Shown here one piece after another: positions 1 to 32,609 of a DNA stretch of 64,000 bases; position 1 is the first letter of the stretch, and each line of letters starts with the position of its first letter. The stretch lies in the sequence record NC_014636.1; one strand, 5' to 3'. Position numbers and translations under genes: made by a program. The notes under the pieces were generated by a model. It was given only the letters and a program-made list of their open reading frames with translations. It was not told where the DNA came from and did no database searches.

Positions 1-227
1 GAGGTAATGCGCAGCAAACGCTGGCTTTCGTGAAGTTTAGACACTCGATTTACCATGTTACTGAGTGCGGTAAGATTAGCCATGACTTTATCACACAGCT
101 TGGCGATACCAGCTTTCTCGTTAAGCTTTTCCATATCGCACACGCGAACAGTGCCGAACTTGGTATCGTTATACTGCTTGAATTCACCGTTAACAACTTC
201 ACCCATTTGACACGCAAAACCAATCAT
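1..227 (-). CDS. UV-damage endonuclease (UvsE/UvdE family), 5' part; runs off window edge
   Basis: Hand-translated, not in ORF track: GAGG SD then MIGFACQMGEVVNGEFKQYNDTKFGTVRV...ANLTAL...RLLRITS, matching the UvsE N-terminal pattern (IGFAC...T...N...RISS). Confidence 0.7.
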   Translation of the reverse strand, partial: MIGFACQMGEVVNGEFKQYNDTKFGTVRVCDMEKLNEKAGIAKLCDKVMANLTALSNMVNRVSKLHESQRLLRIT

Positions 228-5340: not shown

Positions 5341-5566
5341 CTATAAGTCCTTGTTTCACAGCTTGATTGAATAGAGGATGTGTATCTGTGATGCTCACAT
5401 CCCACATACGCAGAATAAGCGAAACATCCTCTAGTGTCAAGTTTTCTTTTGTGATTTTATACGTTTTCGGGATTCGAAGATGTCCGGATATAAAATCCGG
5501 ACTATAATATCTGAGATTTCGACTATCGAATCCAATTTCGTCTTGATGAAGCGCGTCCATACTCAT
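5327..5566 (-). CDS. hypothetical protein
   Basis: 79-aa ORF, coupled. Confidence 0.7.
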   Translation of the reverse strand: MSMDALHQDEIGFDSRNLRYYSPDFISGHLRIPKTYKITKENLTLEDVSLILRMWDVSITDTHPLFNQAVKQGLIDVPV

Positions 5567-6516
5567 GACAGCAGCTCCGCGAGATAAACCTCATAGACAA
5601 AATCGTCCCAGTATTCACGATTCACAGTTTCGCGCATACCGTTTTTGCGAGCGATCACAACCTCTTTCTCAACATCGTTCATAAGTTGTTCGAGATAGGG
5701 ATTAACTTCGTCTACCAGACTACGCTTTCCTAGCTTAACGTCAAGAATAAATTCACGATGTTTCAGCGGGAATTTCAGATCACCGGTCCGATAGATCTCA
5801 AGCAGTTGTTCACCGCCTCGGATAGCATGACTCAACGCTTTCCAGTCTACACCGACTTCCTCTTTCGCACGTTTAGCGCGATCACCATATTCTTCCCAAA
5901 TCTTCTGGACTTGCTGGATAAACTCGGTGATCTTGATTCCATACAGATACTTGCGACCCAGCACCTCATAGAACTCGACAGTTTCACCGGTTCGGGATAC
6001 TTCGGTACCAGAGAATGTGAATTCATCAGTTGGCAGACGATCAACAAAATAACGGAGACGATAGTTCATGTCCGACTGAGGAATGTTAGAGATAACGGTC
6101 ATCACTCGTTCGAGTGCAGCTAGTCGAGTACCCTTAACACCGTACTTGGTAGCTTGTTTTCGGCAGTAGCCCAAGAATGCATCCATACGAGTCGTGTAAA
6201 ACATAGACCGATTTTGCTGAATGACTTCCCAATAAGGAGAAGTTTCCAGCAGCTGGTTACTGTGCAACATATCGATACACATAGTTTCGCCTTTGCTCGC
6301 CAGCTTGATGAACTGACGCAAAGACATCATTTCGGTATCGATATCATCGGCGCCGTTTTTACCTTTACCACCAGTGCTTTCGTTGTAGACTTCGCGACCA
6401 CCCAGAATGATCTCCCGCTTAGTGGGAATAAAGATCCCTTTGTAGTCCCGATCGGAAGTCGGGGTACTCAGCCCGTACAGATGCGAGCCGAATACGGTTT
6501 TCATCATTGTTTTCAT
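5563..6516 (-). CDS. Pol-beta superfamily nucleotidyltransferase (RlaP/PF10127-like)
   Basis: FGSHLYG...SDRDYKGIF (GS-x-DxD) and WKALSHAIR motifs. Confidence 0.85.
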   Translation of the reverse strand: MKTMMKTVFGSHLYGLSTPTSDRDYKGIFIPTKREIILGGREVYNESTGGKGKNGADDIDTEMMSLRQFIKLASKGETMCIDMLHSNQLLETSPYWEVIQQNRSMFYTTRMDAFLGYCRKQATKYGVKGTRLAALERVMTVISNIPQSDMNYRLRYFVDRLPTDEFTFSGTEVSRTGETVEFYEVLGRKYLYGIKITEFIQQVQKIWEEYGDRAKRAKEEVGVDWKALSHAIRGGEQLLEIYRTGDLKFPLKHREFILDVKLGKRSLVDEVNPYLEQLMNDVEKEVVIARKNGMRETVNREYWDDFVYEVYLAELLS

Positions 6517-9256: not shown

Positions 9257-12200
9257 TTACTTACAAGCGATGGACAAGAATTTCTCCAAGTCTTTACCCT
9301 TGATTTTCTTACACATAGAATACCGATTGTACTCGGTACGAGTAGCCGGCACGTAAACGGTAACGTGTGAATCGTCGCCGTATTCAAGCTCAACGCCAGT
9401 TGCTGGATTGAACTCTTTTGGATCAACATACTCAATCACACCGTTTTTACGCATCGGGATCATACCGTCATAGAAAGTATAAATCGCGTAGTCTTTGACG
9501 CTTGCGCGTTTTGCTTCTGTCAGCATTTCTCCAAACTTCATCCGGTTACTTTCAACCAGACTACCTTTCATTTTTGATTGATGCTCTTTGTACTTGCTGA
9601 ACGTGTTAAGCTCAACCTCATAGCATTTCAGCACCTTGATTTGTTTCTTAGGATCGAACACCGCCCATTCCGGAGATCTAACGCCGTGATGATCAGTTGG
9701 GTTCGGAACACCAGCAGAACGATAGTCCTTACGACGCTCGCCAAGAATAGATTCCATTTCGAATACATAGCCACGTGTGCCAGAATGACGGCCATAACCT
9801 TCGTTACTCACGTATTGTAGGATCTTGTCAATCTTGTTACTGAAATACAATCCATCACCAAGCATACGACCAACAACAGATTTATCCTTACTTGGAATAA
9901 TCTTGAATCCATAGCGAAGAACCATGTTAGCAGCAATACCGCCTGTTCCGTGGAAACATGGCACAATTTGCTCCAGTTTTCCTTCCGCTTCTTGTTGCTT
10001 CAAGAACTCGTTATACTCTGGATAAGTCATATTAACAGTAAATGATTTATGAATCAACGGATAAGTGTTACCGTGTTTACCAGCGTAATAATTATCAACC
10101 AGATGCTTGCCAATCAAATATTTCTGTTCATCGGTGATGTTATCATCGACAACAGCAGGAGGAGGAACAACAACGTTTGTATCCGCAGCGGCTTCAACGC
10201 GAGCGATATAATCACTGAACGTTTCGCCTTTCTTGGCGCGTATTTTTGCCGATTTAACCAGTTCATCTGGATCAATCTCGTTAAACTCAAACATCTTTTT
10301 AACGCGAGCCATATTTGGCGTATCAAACATGTTGATTGGACCGCCGTGAACTTGCTTGTAAATGAAGTTAATACCAGTCAAAGTAGTCCGAACTTTACCC
10401 TTGTAATAGTCGTCCATGTTTTCATAGAAAGCATTGGCAACCGCTGGATTAGCTTTCATACCGTTAAACATGATATCAACCAATGTTTGCTGTGCTTTCG
10501 CTTTATCATCACGACGACGAATGCCCATCAGATTTTCTTTGTTCATGAACTTAAAGCCGTGTGCAACTTCAAGACGCATAAACTCAGCCGCGGATTCATC
10601 GTCAAAATCAATCTTGTTGACGAAATCATAAGCGAAATCACCAATATAACTGGATTCCATATCATTGCCCAACTTAGCATAAGACATCAGCAACAGCGGA
10701 ACTCTAACGTGTGGATCGCATTGTCCAGAACGACTAACAAATCGTCTCAGTCCGTCTTTAGTCTTGATGTTAGTCAGCAAATAAGAAATGCGATTCTTCA
10801 ATTCATTTCCGGTTGCGGATTCAAGATAAGCTGGCATAAGCTGCATTGCCTGATAAACTTCGGCAGGATTATCGATCTTCTGAATAATCATGTCTCGAAC
10901 TTCATTTGCAACTTCCGGGAACTTTTCCATTGAACGTTTCAGAGCTTCAATCGGCAAATTATCACCAACCAACTTAGCATAGCGAATCATTGCTTTAGCA
11001 AGGGTAGCAATCGCAATAGAAGGCAGAATACGCAATGGAGTATAAACCATCTGCGCCGGACTAGAATTCATAACTTGTTTAACTTCGTAAACGAATTCTT
11101 TATCCTCAAGATAATTCTTCTTGGTCCAATATTCTTCGATGAAACTGAAATTGGCGTTGGTGATATAATCACGTGCCATATAACGGATCATATTCATATA
11201 TTGATGAACCGGCTTTGTTCCAGCTCCCCATGTCGGTAGACTAGGGATCGTCGGATAAATGCTCGCACATTCTTTATTGAAGATATTCACCATAGTAGTA
11301 ATGGCTTTTGTTCCAATAAACACGTCCGATTCGGAGCCAAACAGAGGATTTAACTTCATATCCACACCTTGCTGAGACATCAGAGAAGTTGTGGCGGAAA
11401 TAAAAGTAACTTCCAATCCGTCTACCATTGCAATTCGGCGCTCGTCTGGTGCGTTGTCCAGTCTAATCGCTAGTGTGATAACCATGTCAGTTGTCATGCC
11501 AAAAGACAACGCTTCCATTTTGCTACCAAGTGCCGATCCGAACAACTCATACATGATATCATCGGCACTAAAGCCAAACAACCAGGATTTGTTATCTACT
11601 TTGCTACCAGCGATAGCATATAGGACGGTATATAGTTCAATTGCGCCAGTAAACGGATTATTCTCTCCGTATACGCCATAACGCTTATACAGATTAATGA
11701 AATCGGAACGATTCTTAATGAAGAATGTGTCCTCGTTCATCTTGTAATTGGTTACATCGAAACTGATATTGTCAATTGAACTTGAATGCAACTTAAATTG
11801 ACGACCGTATCCAGCTAGTTTTGTGATAACGTCGGTGAAGCGTTCGCGATATCGGATAAACATTTCTTCCTGTACTGGGTCTACCAATTCGAATTCGAAT
11901 CCGGTTGGCCAGAAGTCGGAGCCGGAAGTGTATGTGTTCGGGTCAAGTGTATTCATTCCAGAAATACCGGATTTATTCTCCGCAATATGCTGACCAACGA
12001 TAGACAATACAGCATCAGCAAAACCACCTTCGTGATCATAAGTCAGATAACCGGGCTTGACAGGTTCAGCAACGGGCTCTGGCGCAACAGGAGCATCACC
12101 AACAACGTCGATAACAGCGTTGGTATCATCACCAGTTGTAGTTTGTGGAATCGCGGTATCGTTATCCTGTGAGTCACCAGCACCAGTACCGGTAGTAACA

Positions 12201-12808
12201 GTGTCCATATTCTTGAATCGAATGCGGCGACTGACATCCCAATAATCTGTAGAGATCTCGGTATGTTTGTTGCGTTGACGGCGCATTTCCTTTGACGCAT
12301 CAATCATGGAAATTGCACTGTTTTTGAATTTTAGTAGAACGTCACGCAGTTTTGGATCTGCTTTCATGATTGCGCTGTTTTTGATGTTCGCAACCCAGGC
12401 ACGGACAATATCGTCATCAACTGTATTAACCACGCCTGATTTACACAGAACAAGGAAACGGGTCATTTCGTTTACCTTGGCAGAGTTGATAAACATATCT
12501 TTATCATGCATCAGCTTAACGATCAGTGAAATATTGTGATTTCGGTCATCGATGTTACTGATTCTCAACTGGGCATCAGTCTTGAAATAACGCTGGATGA
12601 ATTTGATAGTGGTCTGATCGTTGATCTGTCTAGCAGCATTGAAGCTACCCAGGATACCAAGGAAGTTAAATGCAAATGCATTAATGATAGAAGTTTCATC
12701 ATTAACGAATGTAACTTTGGTATCTTTGTCGTATAAAGTATTTTCAGTCAGAAAACGATTATACGCATGATCGTTTTGACTTTCGAATAATTGTTTAGTT
12801 GTTAACAT
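9257..12808 (-). CDS. large PARP-like (H-Y-E) ADP-ribosyltransferase, probably late/virion-packaged
   Basis: C-terminal FHGT...GDGLYFS...SPEWAVF catalytic motifs; GAGG SD before MLTTKQLFE; late promoter upstream. Confidence 0.8.
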   Translation of the reverse strand: MLTTKQLFESQNDHAYNRFLTENTLYDKDTKVTFVNDETSIINAFAFNFLGILGSFNAARQINDQTTIKFIQRYFKTDAQLRISNIDDRNHNISLIVKLMHDKDMFINSAKVNEMTRFLVLCKSGVVNTVDDDIVRAWVANIKNSAIMKADPKLRDVLLKFKNSAISMIDASKEMRRQRNKHTEISTDYWDVSRRIRFKNMDTVTTGTGAGDSQDNDTAIPQTTTGDDTNAVIDVVGDAPVAPEPVAEPVKPGYLTYDHEGGFADAVLSIVGQHIAENKSGISGMNTLDPNTYTSGSDFWPTGFEFELVDPVQEEMFIRYRERFTDVITKLAGYGRQFKLHSSSIDNISFDVTNYKMNEDTFFIKNRSDFINLYKRYGVYGENNPFTGAIELYTVLYAIAGSKVDNKSWLFGFSADDIMYELFGSALGSKMEALSFGMTTDMVITLAIRLDNAPDERRIAMVDGLEVTFISATTSLMSQQGVDMKLNPLFGSESDVFIGTKAITTMVNIFNKECASIYPTIPSLPTWGAGTKPVHQYMNMIRYMARDYITNANFSFIEEYWTKKNYLEDKEFVYEVKQVMNSSPAQMVYTPLRILPSIAIATLAKAMIRYAKLVGDNLPIEALKRSMEKFPEVANEVRDMIIQKIDNPAEVYQAMQLMPAYLESATGNELKNRISYLLTNIKTKDGLRRFVSRSGQCDPHVRVPLLLMSYAKLGNDMESSYIGDFAYDFVNKIDFDDESAAEFMRLEVAHGFKFMNKENLMGIRRRDDKAKAQQTLVDIMFNGMKANPAVANAFYENMDDYYKGKVRTTLTGINFIYKQVHGGPINMFDTPNMARVKKMFEFNEIDPDELVKSAKIRAKKGETFSDYIARVEAAADTNVVVPPPAVVDDNITDEQKYLIGKHLVDNYYAGKHGNTYPLIHKSFTVNMTYPEYNEFLKQQEAEGKLEQIVPCFHGTGGIAANMVLRYGFKIIPSKDKSVVGRMLGDGLYFSNKIDKILQYVSNEGYGRHSGTRGYVFEMESILGERRKDYRSAGVPNPTDHHGVRSPEWAVFDPKKQIKVLKCYEVELNTFSKYKEHQSKMKGSLVESNRMKFGEMLTEAKRASVKDYAIYTFYDGMIPMRKNGVIEYVDPKEFNPATGVELEYGDDSHVTVYVPATRTEYNRYSMCKKIKGKDLEKFLSIACK

Positions 12809-12879: not shown

Positions 12880-12971
12880 AAAATAAAATCTCTTATAATA
12901 CTTTAATGAGAATCTACTTTGTCTTTTCGTTAGATATCAATGAGTTAGCGCCTACGGCGCTATCTTCGATT
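12880..12971. repeat. dispersed ~92-bp element, copy 1
   Basis: AAAATAAAATCTCTTAT...TGAGAAT...TCAATGAGTTAGCGCCTACGGCGC(T/A)ATCTTCGATT; same blocks and spacing at 43110-43201. Confidence 0.8.
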
Positions 12972-13851
12972 CGCTAGATTGTTCATTATTTATACCGAGT
13001 ACCTGTTCCATGAACTTATCCGATATGCTATTGATCAGATCTGGTCGCTTGATGTTCTCATGAAGCCAAGGATCAAAATCGCCGCTATGGTGTAACACTG
13101 AATAAGCACCAATCATTGAGCCATAGATACTCGCAACGGTATCGCTATCATAGCCGAGATTCGCTATGTAAAAGATCCCGTTCTGCTTCTTATCAAAGAG
13201 CATAAACGTTCTCCAAGCGATGGTGAGCGAATCCTTGACATACCCCGTAGGCTTGCAGTCTGCATTATCAAAGAACAAGCCAAACTCATTCTGGAGCTGT
13301 TCCTTGCTCGCTCCGTCGATGATTCGATGCATGATACGAACATACAGCAGAGAATACTCCACGACGAACTCGATAGGATGCGTAATCTCGGTCAGTTCTC
13401 GCACAACACTTTCGATCTCTTCTTTGCTTTTCCCATACGTCGCAAACGCAACAGGATAGAATCGCATAAGTGCACCATTACCGCAACCTTTGCTCGCGTC
13501 TGTGATTGGCTTGTCCCGCATTATAGCGTTGTATGTGCTAGTACCAATATCGAAGCATTCACCAGTTGACGAAAACGCACCACGATTGACCCAGCGACGG
13601 ATATCACGCTTAATTCCAGCGATGTCGAATTTGCCATCCTGATAATTGTTCATCGTGATTAGTGCGCAAGTCGTATCATCGGTAAAGTAACCGTAATCGT
13701 GATCAAAGCTGTTTTTCTCTGCTTTCAGCGTCTCGATGTCAATTCGGCGAATCTTCTTGCCGGTATTGAACTCGTTGAAGCTACCAACACAATCACCTAT
13801 GATTGCTGCACTAGATGATTGAATCATCATAAGATTTAAGATAAAGTTCAT
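12952..13851 (-). CDS. ADP-ribosylglycohydrolase (ARH/DraG family)
   Basis: IIGDCVG, YFTDDT, GNGALMR, GYDSDTVASIYG motifs; GGAG SD before MNFIL. Confidence 0.92.
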   Translation of the reverse strand: MNFILNLMMIQSSSAAIIGDCVGSFNEFNTGKKIRRIDIETLKAEKNSFDHDYGYFTDDTTCALITMNNYQDGKFDIAGIKRDIRRWVNRGAFSSTGECFDIGTSTYNAIMRDKPITDASKGCGNGALMRFYPVAFATYGKSKEEIESVVRELTEITHPIEFVVEYSLLYVRIMHRIIDGASKEQLQNEFGLFFDNADCKPTGYVKDSLTIAWRTFMLFDKKQNGIFYIANLGYDSDTVASIYGSMIGAYSVLHHSGDFDPWLHENIKRPDLINSISDKFMEQVLGINNEQSSESKIAP

Positions 13852-19764: not shown

Positions 19765-19885
19765 TGGAGGGGAAGGTGGGACTCGAACCCACATACGACA
19801 GTTTGATTTCGATTTAGTTGCCGTAAAGATTCTTGACAGAATCCGCTTTTTCGACTATTGCCTATACCGATTCGGCTACTTCCCC
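19765..19885 (-). ncRNA. tRNA-scaffolded RNA B (121 nt, 3' UCCA) with insert replacing the anticodon loop
   Basis: GGGGAAG/CUUCCCC acceptor, D arm GCC-GAAUCGGUAUA-GGC, T arm GUGGG-UUCGAGU-CCCAC; insert AAAAAGCGGAUUCU-GUCA-AGAAUCUUUACGGCAAC. Confidence 0.8.
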
Positions 19886-19903: not shown

Positions 19904-20021
19904 TGCTGGCGGTCTGGGATTCGAACCCAGGTTACAGGCTTAACAGGCGAGTATTTGTTGCGGAATACATTCTTATCAGAATGAATTTTACAGTGTCCTA
20001 CCACTAGACGAACCGCCAGCA
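19904..20021 (-). ncRNA. tRNA-scaffolded RNA A with the same insert motif, no CCA
   Basis: UGGCGGU/ACCGCCA acceptor extended ~13 bp, D arm, T arm CUGGG-UUCGAAU-CCCAG; insert AAAAUUCAUUCU-GAUA-AGAAUGUAUUCCGCAAC. Confidence 0.78.
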
Positions 20022-20030
20022 TAATGCTGT

Positions 20031-20159
20031 TTGTTGACGCGATGCTGGATTCGAACCAGCGACGTTTCTCGGTGTGCCCACACTATACCGGATTCGAACC
20101 GGTCCCGATACTTCTCTGCGATCAGAGGCGCTCTCCCACTGAGCTAATCGCGTCAACAA
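20031..20159 (-). ncRNA. tRNA-like RNA G with two T arms
   Basis: GACGCGA/UCGCGUC acceptor, D arm GCUC-AGUGGGA-GAGC, T arms ACCGG-UUCGAAU-CCGGU and GCUGG-UUCGAAU-CCAGC; no CCA. Confidence 0.75.
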
Positions 20160-20654: not shown

Positions 20655-20691
20655 GATGTCGCCATTATAGCGACATCGGATTATCTGTCAA
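20655..20691 (-). promoter_or_regulatory. early promoter with inverted repeat over the -10
   Basis: TTGACA-N16-TATAAT; GATGTCGC/GCGACATC arms. Confidence 0.85.
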
Positions 20692-27246: not shown

Positions 27247-27333
27247 TAGGTGTAGTCGGGTGGGACTCGAACCCACAACCCGAACGGTTTCTGCCGTTCA
27301 GCTCTTCCAATTGAGACTTACCGATAACACCTA
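27247..27333 (-). pseudogene. degenerate tRNA-like element
   Basis: Intact T arm GUGGG-UUCGAGU-CCCAC and D-like arm; 7-bp/6-nt-loop anticodon arm, broken acceptor, no CCA. Confidence 0.55.
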
Positions 27334-30467: not shown

Positions 30468-30569
30468 CGCTAAGGATAGGAATCGAACCTATCATGAAAT
30501 CAATACCGACGGGGCAATCTATATCCCGACTTTCGAGAAGCTATCCCATTGCACTTAAAAGCATTAGCG
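30468..30569 (-). ncRNA. tRNA-like RNA (~100 nt) with T arm and expanded centre
   Basis: AUAGG-UUCGAUU-CCUAU T arm followed by CUUAGCG pairing with 5' CGCUAA; no CCA. Confidence 0.5.
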
Positions 30570-32512: not shown

Positions 32513-32609
32513 TGGTTCTCCGTACGGGATTCGAACCCGTGTACTCGCCGTGAAAGGGCGATATCCTAGCCGTGAAAGGGCGATATCCTAGCCGTTAGAT
32601 GAACGGAGA
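32513..32609 (-). tRNA. tRNA-Glu(UUC) with 22-nt internal tandem duplication
   Basis: 75-nt tRNA plus duplicated GCCGTGAAAGGGCGATATCCTA (32547-32568, 32569-32590); ACCA. Confidence 0.85.

Follow-up and report, generated by a model that had tools for sequence, protein, structure and literature searches.

The 64,000-nt window analyzed here corresponds to positions 161269–225268 of the genome of Aeromonas phage phiAS5 (NC_014636), on the same strand as the record and making up its final 64 kb. phiAS5 is a T4-like phage of the Straboviridae, genus Chrysonvirus. On the minus strand of this window, in a 470-nt gap between ORF0283 and ORF0282 that carries no annotation in the phiAS5 record, lies tY3, a gene for a 121-nt tRNA-shaped RNA. 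Two sibling RNAs, tY2 and tY1, belong to the same cluster, and tY3 is situated 2.6 kb downstream of ORF0290, a gene on the same strand for a Ro60-like protein of the DUF2828 family (Table 1). The evidence set out below makes it probable that tY3 is a non-decoding, tRNA-shaped partner RNA of this protein, and hence a phage analogue of the Y RNAs.

Read from 19885 to 19765, tY3 has the sequence GGGGAAG-UA-GCCG-AAUCGGUAUA-GGC-A-AUAGU-(51 nt)-ACUGU-CGUAU-GUGGG-UUCGAGU-CCCAC-CUUCCCC-U-CCA. The acceptor stem (GGGGAAG/CUUCCCC), the D arm (GCCG-AAUCGGUAUA-GGC) and the T arm (GUGGG-UUCGAGU-CCCAC) are intact, the variable loop is CGUAU, UCCA is encoded, and the nucleotides of the tRNA tertiary structure (U8, A14, G18G19, U54U55C56 and A58) are in place. 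The Rfam tRNA model RF00005 matches at 46.3 bits, against a gathering score of 29 and with E 1e-6 for the 64-kb window, skipping 50 nt between the two sides of the anticodon stem. ARAGORN in its default mode made no call for tY3, while in intron mode it called the gene with an arbitrary anticodon and gave the orthologues unrelated ones.

The 51-nt insert reads C-G-AAAAA-G-C-GGAUUCU-GUCA-AGAAUCU-UU-A-CGGCAA-C-UAAAUCGAAAUCAA. Within it is a module in which an A-run is followed by a 7-bp helix (GGAUUCU/AGAAUCU, with one G.U pair), a GUCA loop and then UUUACGGCAAC; the motif in tY3 is UUACGGCAAC, and the family consensus is U(U/A)(A/U)CNGCAA. A single-sequence fold recovered the acceptor stem, the T arm and the module hairpin (z = -3.6). 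The original prediction, made from the letters of the DNA, had described intact arms with an encoded UCCA, and this agrees with the tRNA model match; its insert of about 50 nt and its GUCA loop also stand, with the length now put at exactly 51 nt and its 6-bp helix extended to 7 bp by the G.U pair. Its statement that the module replaces the anticodon loop is correct for tY3, but several relatives have the module as an additional arm next to a loop that resembles an anticodon loop. Two further pairings were considered and rejected. A pairing of CGGCA with the 3′ anticodon-stem region, proposed by both RNAalifold and the single-sequence fold, was discarded because it is broken in two of five orthologues and absent from the other subfamilies, and a possible UCGA/UCGA helix around the phiAS5 module is not kept in PX29 or Aeh1.

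The anticodon loop of a decoding tRNA is 7 nt long and contains U33 and a conserved anticodon, whereas 51 nt separate the AUAGU and ACUGU arms of tY3. The final seven bases of the insert are AAAUCAA, AAAUUAA or AAUUCAA among the orthologues, and U33 is never present, so that the anticodon loop appears degenerate and unusable for decoding. Nor is there a stable aminoacylation identity, as phiAS5 and Aeh1 have U at the discriminator position, PX29 and avDM12 have G, and the acceptor pair 3:70 is either G-C or G.U.

The three-RNA cluster tY1-tY2-tY3 was found in 13 Aeromonas phage records at 81–100% identity. Among the orthologues, the insert helix shows a compensatory change from GGAUUCU/AGAAUC to GGAAUCU/AGAUUC, the T stem changes from GUGGG/CCCAC to GCGGG/CCCGU, the D stem is also altered in a compensatory way, and at the 15:48 tertiary pair phiAS5 has A:U where PX29 and Aeh1 have G:C. 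Set against the drifting heptamer and discriminator, these changes argue that the body and the insert are under selection while the anticodon and the aminoacylation identity are not, and in sequence terms they mark tY3 as a conserved gene and not a decayed tRNA.

The original prediction had been staked in part on covariation in the module, and covariation was found. Across 20 aligned relatives from Aeromonas phages, Vibrio phages and metagenomic phages, the module helix scored 0.462 against 0.135±0.026 in shuffles, none of 500 shuffles reached that value, and partners slid out of register scored at most 0.17; single positions included pair types such as GC:8/CG:6/UA:3/AU:2 and UA:10/AU:7. Since full-length alignments with MAFFT and RNAalifold mis-registered the D arm, the acceptor stem and the T stem between subfamilies, only the module helix was scored in this way, and covariation in the body was judged by eye. 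A covariance model of the module only, R1, found just two sites in the window, tY3 (45.0 bits) and tY2 (43.8 bits), and among sequences outside its training set it matched five loci (L139, L132, L156, L130 and L093) with E values from 4e-4 to 0.04. A loosely defined regular expression for an A-run, a hairpin and CNGCA gave 624 real against about 400 shuffled matches; because it was uninformative, it was replaced by the covariance model and by the strand and terminal-pair statistics given below.

The hairpin form of the module is shared by a wider family of tRNA-shaped RNAs. In tY2, the module AAAAUU-CAUUCU-GAUA-AGAAUG-UAUUCCGCAAC is followed by an anticodon-like CUGUUAA, and CCA is not encoded. 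The tY2 sequence GCCUGUUAAGC is invariant in the Aeromonas phages and common to the Vibrio phage RNA pp2_5, and it resembles the anticodon loop of tRNA-Asn (GUU); phiAS5 and Vibrio phage phi-pp2, both of which have the tY2-type Asn-like loop, already possess tRNA-Asn genes. The third member of the cluster, tY1, was kept in all 13 related phage records, and the CNGCAA module is absent from it. It has two complete T arms (CCGGUUCGAAUCCGG and GCUGGUUCGAAUCCAGC) separated by a GUGU-GGGC-ACAC hairpin, its anticodon stem ends in a loop of 4 nt, and it is called tRNA-Ala both by ARAGORN (via the first T arm) and in phiWae14. The KVP40-type phage phi-pp2 has five module-bearing genes of 113–124 nt, recorded as tRNA-OTHER, Phe, Asn and Val, and the family occurs also in Aeh1-type phages and in many IMG/VR contigs. 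Among the IMG/VR loci with a DUF2828 gene, one (L011) has two module RNAs directly 3′ of the gene and another (L032) has one directly 5′ of it.

The position of the module differs between family members. It lies within the 5′ strand of the anticodon stem in tY2 and pp2_5, which keep CUGUUAA, and likewise in L032 (AUGAUAA) and L018 (AUCCUAA); it is on the 5′ side of the loop in L011a (...UGGUAA); and it stands as an additional arm between the D arm and an anticodon arm that looks intact in L011b and L139 (UUCC-AUUCCAA-GGAA/G), L130 (UUCC-AUUUCAA-GGAA) and L133 (AGG-CUGUCAA-CCU). tY2, L011b and L130 have what we take to be a Glu-like D arm. The module thus looks like a portable handle that was repeatedly grafted onto the bodies of different tRNA types.

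The same module is found in a second topology. Within the phiAS5 tRNA cluster, three small RNAs designated C, D and E follow the common plan stem-(N)UUCAGCAA...AAAAG-stem, in which the module is split between the two ends of the RNA; with its T arm, closed stem-loop and D-like segment, RNA E is of the YrlA type in topology. The Rfam YrlA model (RF02553) did not match RNAs C, D and E, or the JH2 RNAs described next, even at E<=10. In the Felix-O1-like Escherichia phage JH2 (L008, 13180-14110), four Y-like RNAs with CAG-AAG-ACCnnnn-CAGCAA stand directly 3′ of the DUF2828 gene, and one of the four combines a T arm and a D arm with a closed hairpin resembling an acceptor. The JH2 terminal helix has a conserved 3-nt AAG bulge (CAG-AAG-ACCxx / xxGGU-CUG) that recalls the bulged helix of metazoan Y RNAs, and the JH2 record carries no annotation of the four RNAs or of its tRNA cluster.

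The split form was then counted at 79 IMG/VR DUF2828 loci, using a pattern of at least 7 bp, up to 4 nt, CNGCAA and an A-run before the partner strand. It occurred 160 times on the gene strand, 36 times on the opposite strand and 72 times on both strands of reversed-sequence controls; with terminal 5′-AG...CU-3′ pairs, the counts were 44, 2 and 0, and this subset was spread over 25 loci. These terminal AG/CU pairs of the split form are the loop-closing pairs of the hairpin form. The two forms also agree on both strands of the module: the CNGCAA-anchored strand is CTGatAAGa.T..tTaCaGCAA in the hairpin form (n = 22) and ..ttaAAGaaT..tT.CAGCAA in the split form (n = 33), and the partner strand is aa....AAAa.g.A.tCT and ..aaa.AAAa...AttCT, respectively. 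A direct comparison is offered by the split RNA of one contig (L067), AGAAUCUUU-U-CAGCAAAC...AAAAAA-AGAGAUUCU, and tY3, AAAAAG-CGGAUUCU-GUCA-AGAAUCUUU-A-CGGCAAC. Judged from these alignments, the hairpin and split forms are related by a true circular permutation, and the agreement of the consensus on both strands bears out the earlier claim that the tY3 helix is the terminal helix of RNAs C, D and E in permuted form. Three tandem RNAs directly 3′ of the Ro-like gene of mycobacteriophage Clautastrophe (L208, 5480-5740) start with GUGGAC, end with GUCCAGU and contain CAGCAA in each. The middle one, which alone of the three has a tRNA-like domain, has the terminal helix GGACCCC-ca-CAGCAA...UUAAAAAC-GGGGUCC (A-run AAAAAC) and is matched by Rfam YrlA with 39.3 bits (E 6e-6; the gathering score is 69). 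Thus an RNA picked up by the curated Y-RNA model contains the module, and it stands beside a homologue of the phiAS5 protein.

Two observations adjoin the split-form RNAs. Minimal hairpins such as GGUAC-AGCAAAAA-GUAC, in which CAGCAA is joined straight to the A-run as the loop, follow Y-like RNAs in IMG/VR contigs (L020 3900-3930, L037 about 11500-11530, L047 and L069) and would be a module without a body. Upstream of RNAs C and D in phiAS5, about 290 nt of unannotated and apparently structured sequence contain a CCUCUUCGGAGG hairpin and the long-range complementary segments AUAUGCCGAUAAGGA/UCUUUAUCGGCAUAU, with no Rfam match at the gathering score.

The neighboring gene, ORF0290, is annotated in the record as an 'RNA-binding protein'. 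An AlphaFold2 model built from 40 homologues (predicted local distance difference test, pLDDT, 87.9; predicted template-modeling score, pTM, 0.88) has the HEAT-repeat ring and vWA domain of Ro60/TROVE proteins, and Foldseek matched it over its full length to the Ro60 structures 2i91, 1yvr, 1yvp and 9nfa (E about 1e-8, TM 0.58-0.64); the next matches were isolated vWA domains. A phmmer search with ORF0290 gave no match among PDB sequences, profile searches matched TROVE chains only marginally (E 0.12), and the Pfam families are DUF2828 and DUF7788, not TROVE. The Ro60 relationship, as far as the predicted model goes, is visible by fold comparison only. Homologues of the DUF2828 protein turned up in at least 7,900 clusters and in about 700 phage records. 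Among these are Felixounavirus, KVP40-like, Listeria, Staphylococcus and Campylobacter phages and mycobacteriophages, where they are annotated 'Ro-like'; the phi-pp2 protein is 47% identical to that of phiAS5.

The RNAs and the protein gene are linked. tY3 is on the same strand as, and within about 4 kb of, a Ro60-type gene, and the RNA cluster and close DUF2828 orthologues are each found in 13 Aeromonas phage records, in bands of 3 at at least 99% and 10 at 80–90%. A motif scan of IMG/VR consisted mostly of chance matches and was usable only after filtering for a tRNA context. Among the matches listed, a same-strand adjacent DUF2828-like open reading frame was present for 6 of the 13 in a tRNA context versus 1 of the 105 others (Fisher p = 3.5e-6), and some of the linked reading frames were only about 23% identical to the phiAS5 protein. 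Together, the Ro60 fold, the same-strand adjacency and the YrlA-model match in the mycobacteriophage support a link between the module and the DUF2828 protein.

Several known systems can be compared with tY3, the nearest of which are the YrlA-type Y RNAs, whose function is probably analogous. YrlA RNAs are tRNA mimics whose genes lie no more than 4 kb from Ro60, on its strand, and whose 5′ motif is thought to bind Rsr (PMC4201824). Both YrlA (RF02553; PMC4201824; 10.1101/312249) and tY3 are encoded on the same strand near a Ro60-type gene and have a helix, the presumed protein site, flanked by a short conserved motif. The protein-binding helix of YrlA is built from its 5′ and 3′ ends, the acceptor is closed and there is no CCA, whereas tY3 has a free acceptor stem with CCA and a module closed by the GUCA tetraloop, which makes it the topological inverse of YrlA, as had been proposed; the partner is a DUF2828 protein for tY3 and a Pfam TROVE protein for YrlA. 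By covariance model, motif and topology alike, tY3 falls outside the YrlA class, and its membership was rejected. Yrn1 of Deinococcus radiodurans is a Y RNA whose T-arm-like element tethers the Ro ring to another protein in the Rsr-Y RNA-PNPase complex, but its Ro-binding stem is formed from the RNA ends and its likeness to tRNA is only partial (PMC4201824). Thermus phage phiLo likewise encodes a Ro60 homologue with adjacent small RNAs, Yrl1 and Yrl2, that were bound in vitro; in contrast to tY3, these are stem-bulge-stem Y RNAs with a CGAA motif, not embedded in a tRNA, and the protein is a TROVE-domain Ro60 (PMC12135203). The Ro60-like gp130 of Felixounavirus Bas63 counters the Ppl defense, and its authors guessed that some neighboring 'tRNAs' are Y RNAs (PMC11482910). 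In the literature searched, no description was found of tRNA-embedded Y-like modules or of RNA partners for DUF2828 proteins.

Archaeal and algal intron-containing and permuted tRNA genes also have extra sequence near the anticodon arm and permutation relationships, but their inserts are cut out at a bulge-helix-bulge to give decoding tRNAs, and tY3 shows no sign of such a motif, of such an enzyme or of a loop that could be restored; with no intron core either, tY3 was rejected as an intron-containing tRNA. The T4 RNAs rnaC and rnaD (species 1 and 2), stable RNAs of about 120–140 nt and unknown function at the end of the T4-type tRNA cluster, had been put forward as precedents, and rnaC does have a T-arm-like hairpin. 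They contain no CNGCAA module and gave no tRNA-model match at E<=1, no evidence of homology was found, and T4 is absent among the DUF2828 matches listed, so that what remains of that comparison is a loose analogy. One design precedent is man-made: the tRNA scaffolds of Ponchon and Dardel for recombinant RNA reportedly carry an RNA module on the anticodon stem, with tRNA processing and fold giving defined ends and stability. tY3 has its module in the same place, and it is natural and conserved.

On the reading of tY3 as a partner RNA of the Ro60-like protein, a pathway can be proposed. tY3 would probably be co-transcribed with ORF0283, tY1 and tY2 from the promoter-like site at 20691, and no terminator-like site was seen on the minus strand between this site and the tY cluster. 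Its tRNA-like ends imply excision by the host tRNA-processing enzymes, with RNase P cutting at G1 and 3′ trimming to the encoded CCA. The processed RNA would fold into the L-shape of a tRNA with a helix of about 9 bp on the anticodon stem instead of the loop, bounded distally by the conserved ...AUYCU / AGRAU... and proximally by an asymmetric loop in which the A-run lies opposite UUA-CNGCAA. This module is the likely docking site for the Ro-like ring, because it is common to all RNAs encoded beside DUF2828 genes. The tRNA body would supply nuclease-resistant, precisely processed ends and probably a second, tRNA-like surface that tethers another factor, in the way that a Y RNA tethers Rsr to PNPase. 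This functional model is borrowed from Rsr-Y RNA-PNPase, YrlA and the phiLo Ro60, and it would have tY3 expressed, processed and bound by the protein, neither aminoacylated nor used in decoding, and acting downstream in RNA surveillance or counter-defense. Since the Felixounavirus Ro60-like protein counters a defense system (PMC11482910), the module RNAs may be cofactors of a counter-defense ribonucleoprotein.

Some observations weigh against this interpretation. The motif differs, being CNGCAA in the tY3 family and GNCGAAN0-1G in YrlA, and Rfam YrlA (RF02553) gave no match to tY3, with a spurious 17.2-bit match spanning tY1/tY2 only. The promoter, read from 20691 to 20664, is weak evidence, as a consensus match only. 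In KVP40-type phages, the RNAs are about 12 kb from the DUF2828 gene, and adjacency of RNA and gene is therefore not universal. Finally, the anticodon-like loops kept in relatives (CUGUUAA, AUGAUAA, AUUCCAA, AUUUCAA and CUGUCAA) hint at factors that recognize anticodons or at further processing. Some family members may accordingly act as decoys or, with lower probability, undergo excision.

Such loops, together with an RNA-to-gene distance that ranges from 0.2 to 12 kb, are what would be expected if tY3 were a tRNA-mimic decoy or adaptor independent of the DUF2828 protein, its module binding a host nuclease, a modification enzyme, a ribosome-associated factor or a defense tRNase. Phage tRNAs are reported to counter defense tRNases (PMC11555353; 10.1101/2024.01.02.573894). 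However, the same-strand linkage to DUF2828 is the sole feature common to all module-bearing RNAs, whether they have tRNA parts or none, and the protein belongs structurally to a family defined by binding such helices, which leaves this explanation rather unlikely. Distinctly less likely is a reading that does involve the Ro60-like protein, in which phages would graft the handle onto Asn-, Glu-, Gly-, Asp-, Ile-, Arg- and Thr-like bodies and so create tagged or caged tRNAs. The Ro60-like ring would grip tRNA-shaped RNAs with their anticodon loop still exposed, and it might then pass them to anticodon nucleases and repair enzymes of the host, as decoys or as substrates, or set working tRNAs free through a protein-assisted excision of an undescribed kind; tY3 would be a member that has lost its loop.

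The possibility that tY3 is an interrupted, or caged, tRNA gene, from which the module is removed, perhaps by an endonuclease and an RNA ligase while the Ro-like protein keeps hold of it, to free a functional tRNA, is very improbable. It would account for the tRNAscan-type annotation of the PX29 orthologue as a two-piece tRNA-Leu and for the canonical-looking anticodon loops 3′ of the module in relatives, and a 2018 preprint suggested that YrlA-type RNAs may be processed toward canonical tRNAs (10.1101/312249). Yet no excision from tY3 restores a U33 loop with a conserved anticodon, the heptamer and the discriminator drift among close relatives, and the insert is the most conserved part and is common to RNAs without tRNA exons. 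The Rfam scans gave no match to any family of group I introns, whose core would not fit into 51 nt, no bulge-helix-bulge was seen by eye in tY3, and the implied anticodons duplicate tRNAs already on hand (GUU in phiAS5 and phi-pp2). That tY3 is a decaying tRNA pseudogene with a chance insertion is scarcely credible: ARAGORN misses it by default and a neighboring tRNA-Glu gene has an internal duplication, but its conservation across genera, together with compensatory substitutions in the insert helix, in both the T and the D stem and at the 15:48 pair, contradicts decay, and the module recurs in independent tRNA bodies.

As a probable partner RNA of a Ro60-like protein, tY3 ties the large phage family DUF2828 to candidate RNA ligands with a defined motif, whose binding and function are testable. 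The Y-RNA design of a protein-binding helix plus a tRNA mimic is present in both circular permutations, which argues for two modules that are independent of each other and for selection on the tRNA part in its own right. Genome annotation is also affected. In GenBank, the tY3 orthologue is a two-piece tRNA-Leu in PX29, a 122-nt tRNA-Val CAC in Aeh1 and unlabeled in phiAS5, and published genome papers label such genes as ordinary tRNAs (PMC1524935; PMC3468402). Genes recorded as tRNA-Val, -Leu, -Phe, -Asn or 'OTHER', or missed altogether, can now be corrected; phage tRNA counts and arguments from codon usage have been distorted by them.

Table 1. Features of the phiAS5 window discussed in the text. 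Positions are window coordinates unless marked RNA, in which case they are numbered from the 5′ end of tY3.
Feature	Position	Strand	Evidence or remarks
tY3, 121-nt tRNA-shaped RNA gene	19765..19885	-	Rfam tRNA model match; orthologues in 13 Aeromonas phage records
tY3 acceptor stem	RNA 1-7/111-117	-	
tY3 D arm	RNA 10-26	-	
tY3 anticodon stem	RNA 28-32/84-88	-	
tY3 insert	RNA 33-83	-	
tY3 T arm	RNA 94-110	-	
tY3 discriminator, U	RNA 118	-	
tY3 CCA	RNA 119-121	-	
Module in tY3	19817..19851	-	Covariation; module covariance model R1, 45.0 bits
Module A-run	19851-19847	-	
Module helix, 5′ strand GGAUUCU	19844-19838	-	
Module loop GUCA	19837-19834	-	
Module helix, 3′ strand AGAAUCU	19833-19827	-	Followed by UUA linker
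Module CGGCAA	19823-19818	-	
Module C	19817	-	
tY2, sibling tRNA-shaped RNA with module	19904..20020	-	R1, 43.8 bits; orthologues known
tY1, third tRNA-shaped RNA of cluster	20035..20154	-	Rfam tRNA, 40.4 bits via second T arm
Sigma-70 consensus promoter TTGACA-16-TATAAT, 12/12	20664..20691	-	Upstream of ORF0283 and tY1-tY3 cluster; consensus match only
ORF0290, Ro60-like protein gene, DUF2828 + DUF7788/vWA, 477 aa	22479..23912	-	Pfam, AlphaFold2, Foldseek
RNA E, Y-like RNA	34373..34477	-	Split module around T arm (GGGGUUCGACUCCC), closed stem-loop, D-like segment
RNA D, Y-like RNA	34611..34674	-	Split module GGAAUGAGU-U-CAGCAA...UUAAAA-GUUCAUUCC
RNA C, small Y-like RNA	34739..34792	-	Split module AGGCUG-cgUU-CAGCAA...AAAAG-U-CAGCCU
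Structured stretch upstream of RNAs C and D	34880-35170	-	
RlaP-family nucleotidyltransferase	5563-6516	-	RNA-repair associated
1183-aa protein	9257-12808	-	Weak PARP-catalytic match below Pfam cut-off
ADP-ribosylglycohydrolase	12952-13851	-	Annotated
Uncalled tRNA-like element	27250-27330	-	Between ORF0300 and ORF0301
Isolated T-arm-like hairpin	30470-30560	-	
tRNA-Glu (UUC) gene, 97 nt	32513-32609	-	No Rfam report at gathering score
ORF0320, 'RNA ligase' (T4 57B position)	38238-38735	-	Pfam Acb1, E 8e-33

Other elements of the window and of the related loci deserve a brief mention. The tRNA-Glu (UUC) gene owes its length to a perfect 22-nt tandem duplication (GGCTAGGATATCGCCCTTTCAC twice) that comprises the 3′ half of the D arm and the anticodon arm. 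In the uncalled tRNA-like element, a long stem resembling an acceptor (GGUGUUAUCGG/CCGACUACACC) is accompanied by an arm whose loop has 6 nt (GAACGG-CAGAAA-CCGUUC) and by a T arm of canonical form (GUGGGUUCGAGUCCCAC), and the isolated T-arm-like hairpin (GAUAGGUUCGAUUCCUAUC) is in an unannotated stretch between tRNA-Lys and tRNA-Pro. Protein genes of the window include, besides those for the nucleotidyltransferase and the ADP-ribosylglycohydrolase, ORF0320, whose product is labeled an RNA ligase and matches Acb1, the anti-CBASS (cyclic oligonucleotide-based antiphage signaling system) phosphodiesterase. ARAGORN in intron mode also called tRNA-Leu (UAA) genes with anticodon-loop inserts of 199–695 nt in three loci (L041 21063-21346, L058 19381-19664 and L081 11622-12401); these inserts resemble group I introns and are unrelated to the module, and the one in L081 appears to hold an endonuclease-like open reading frame.

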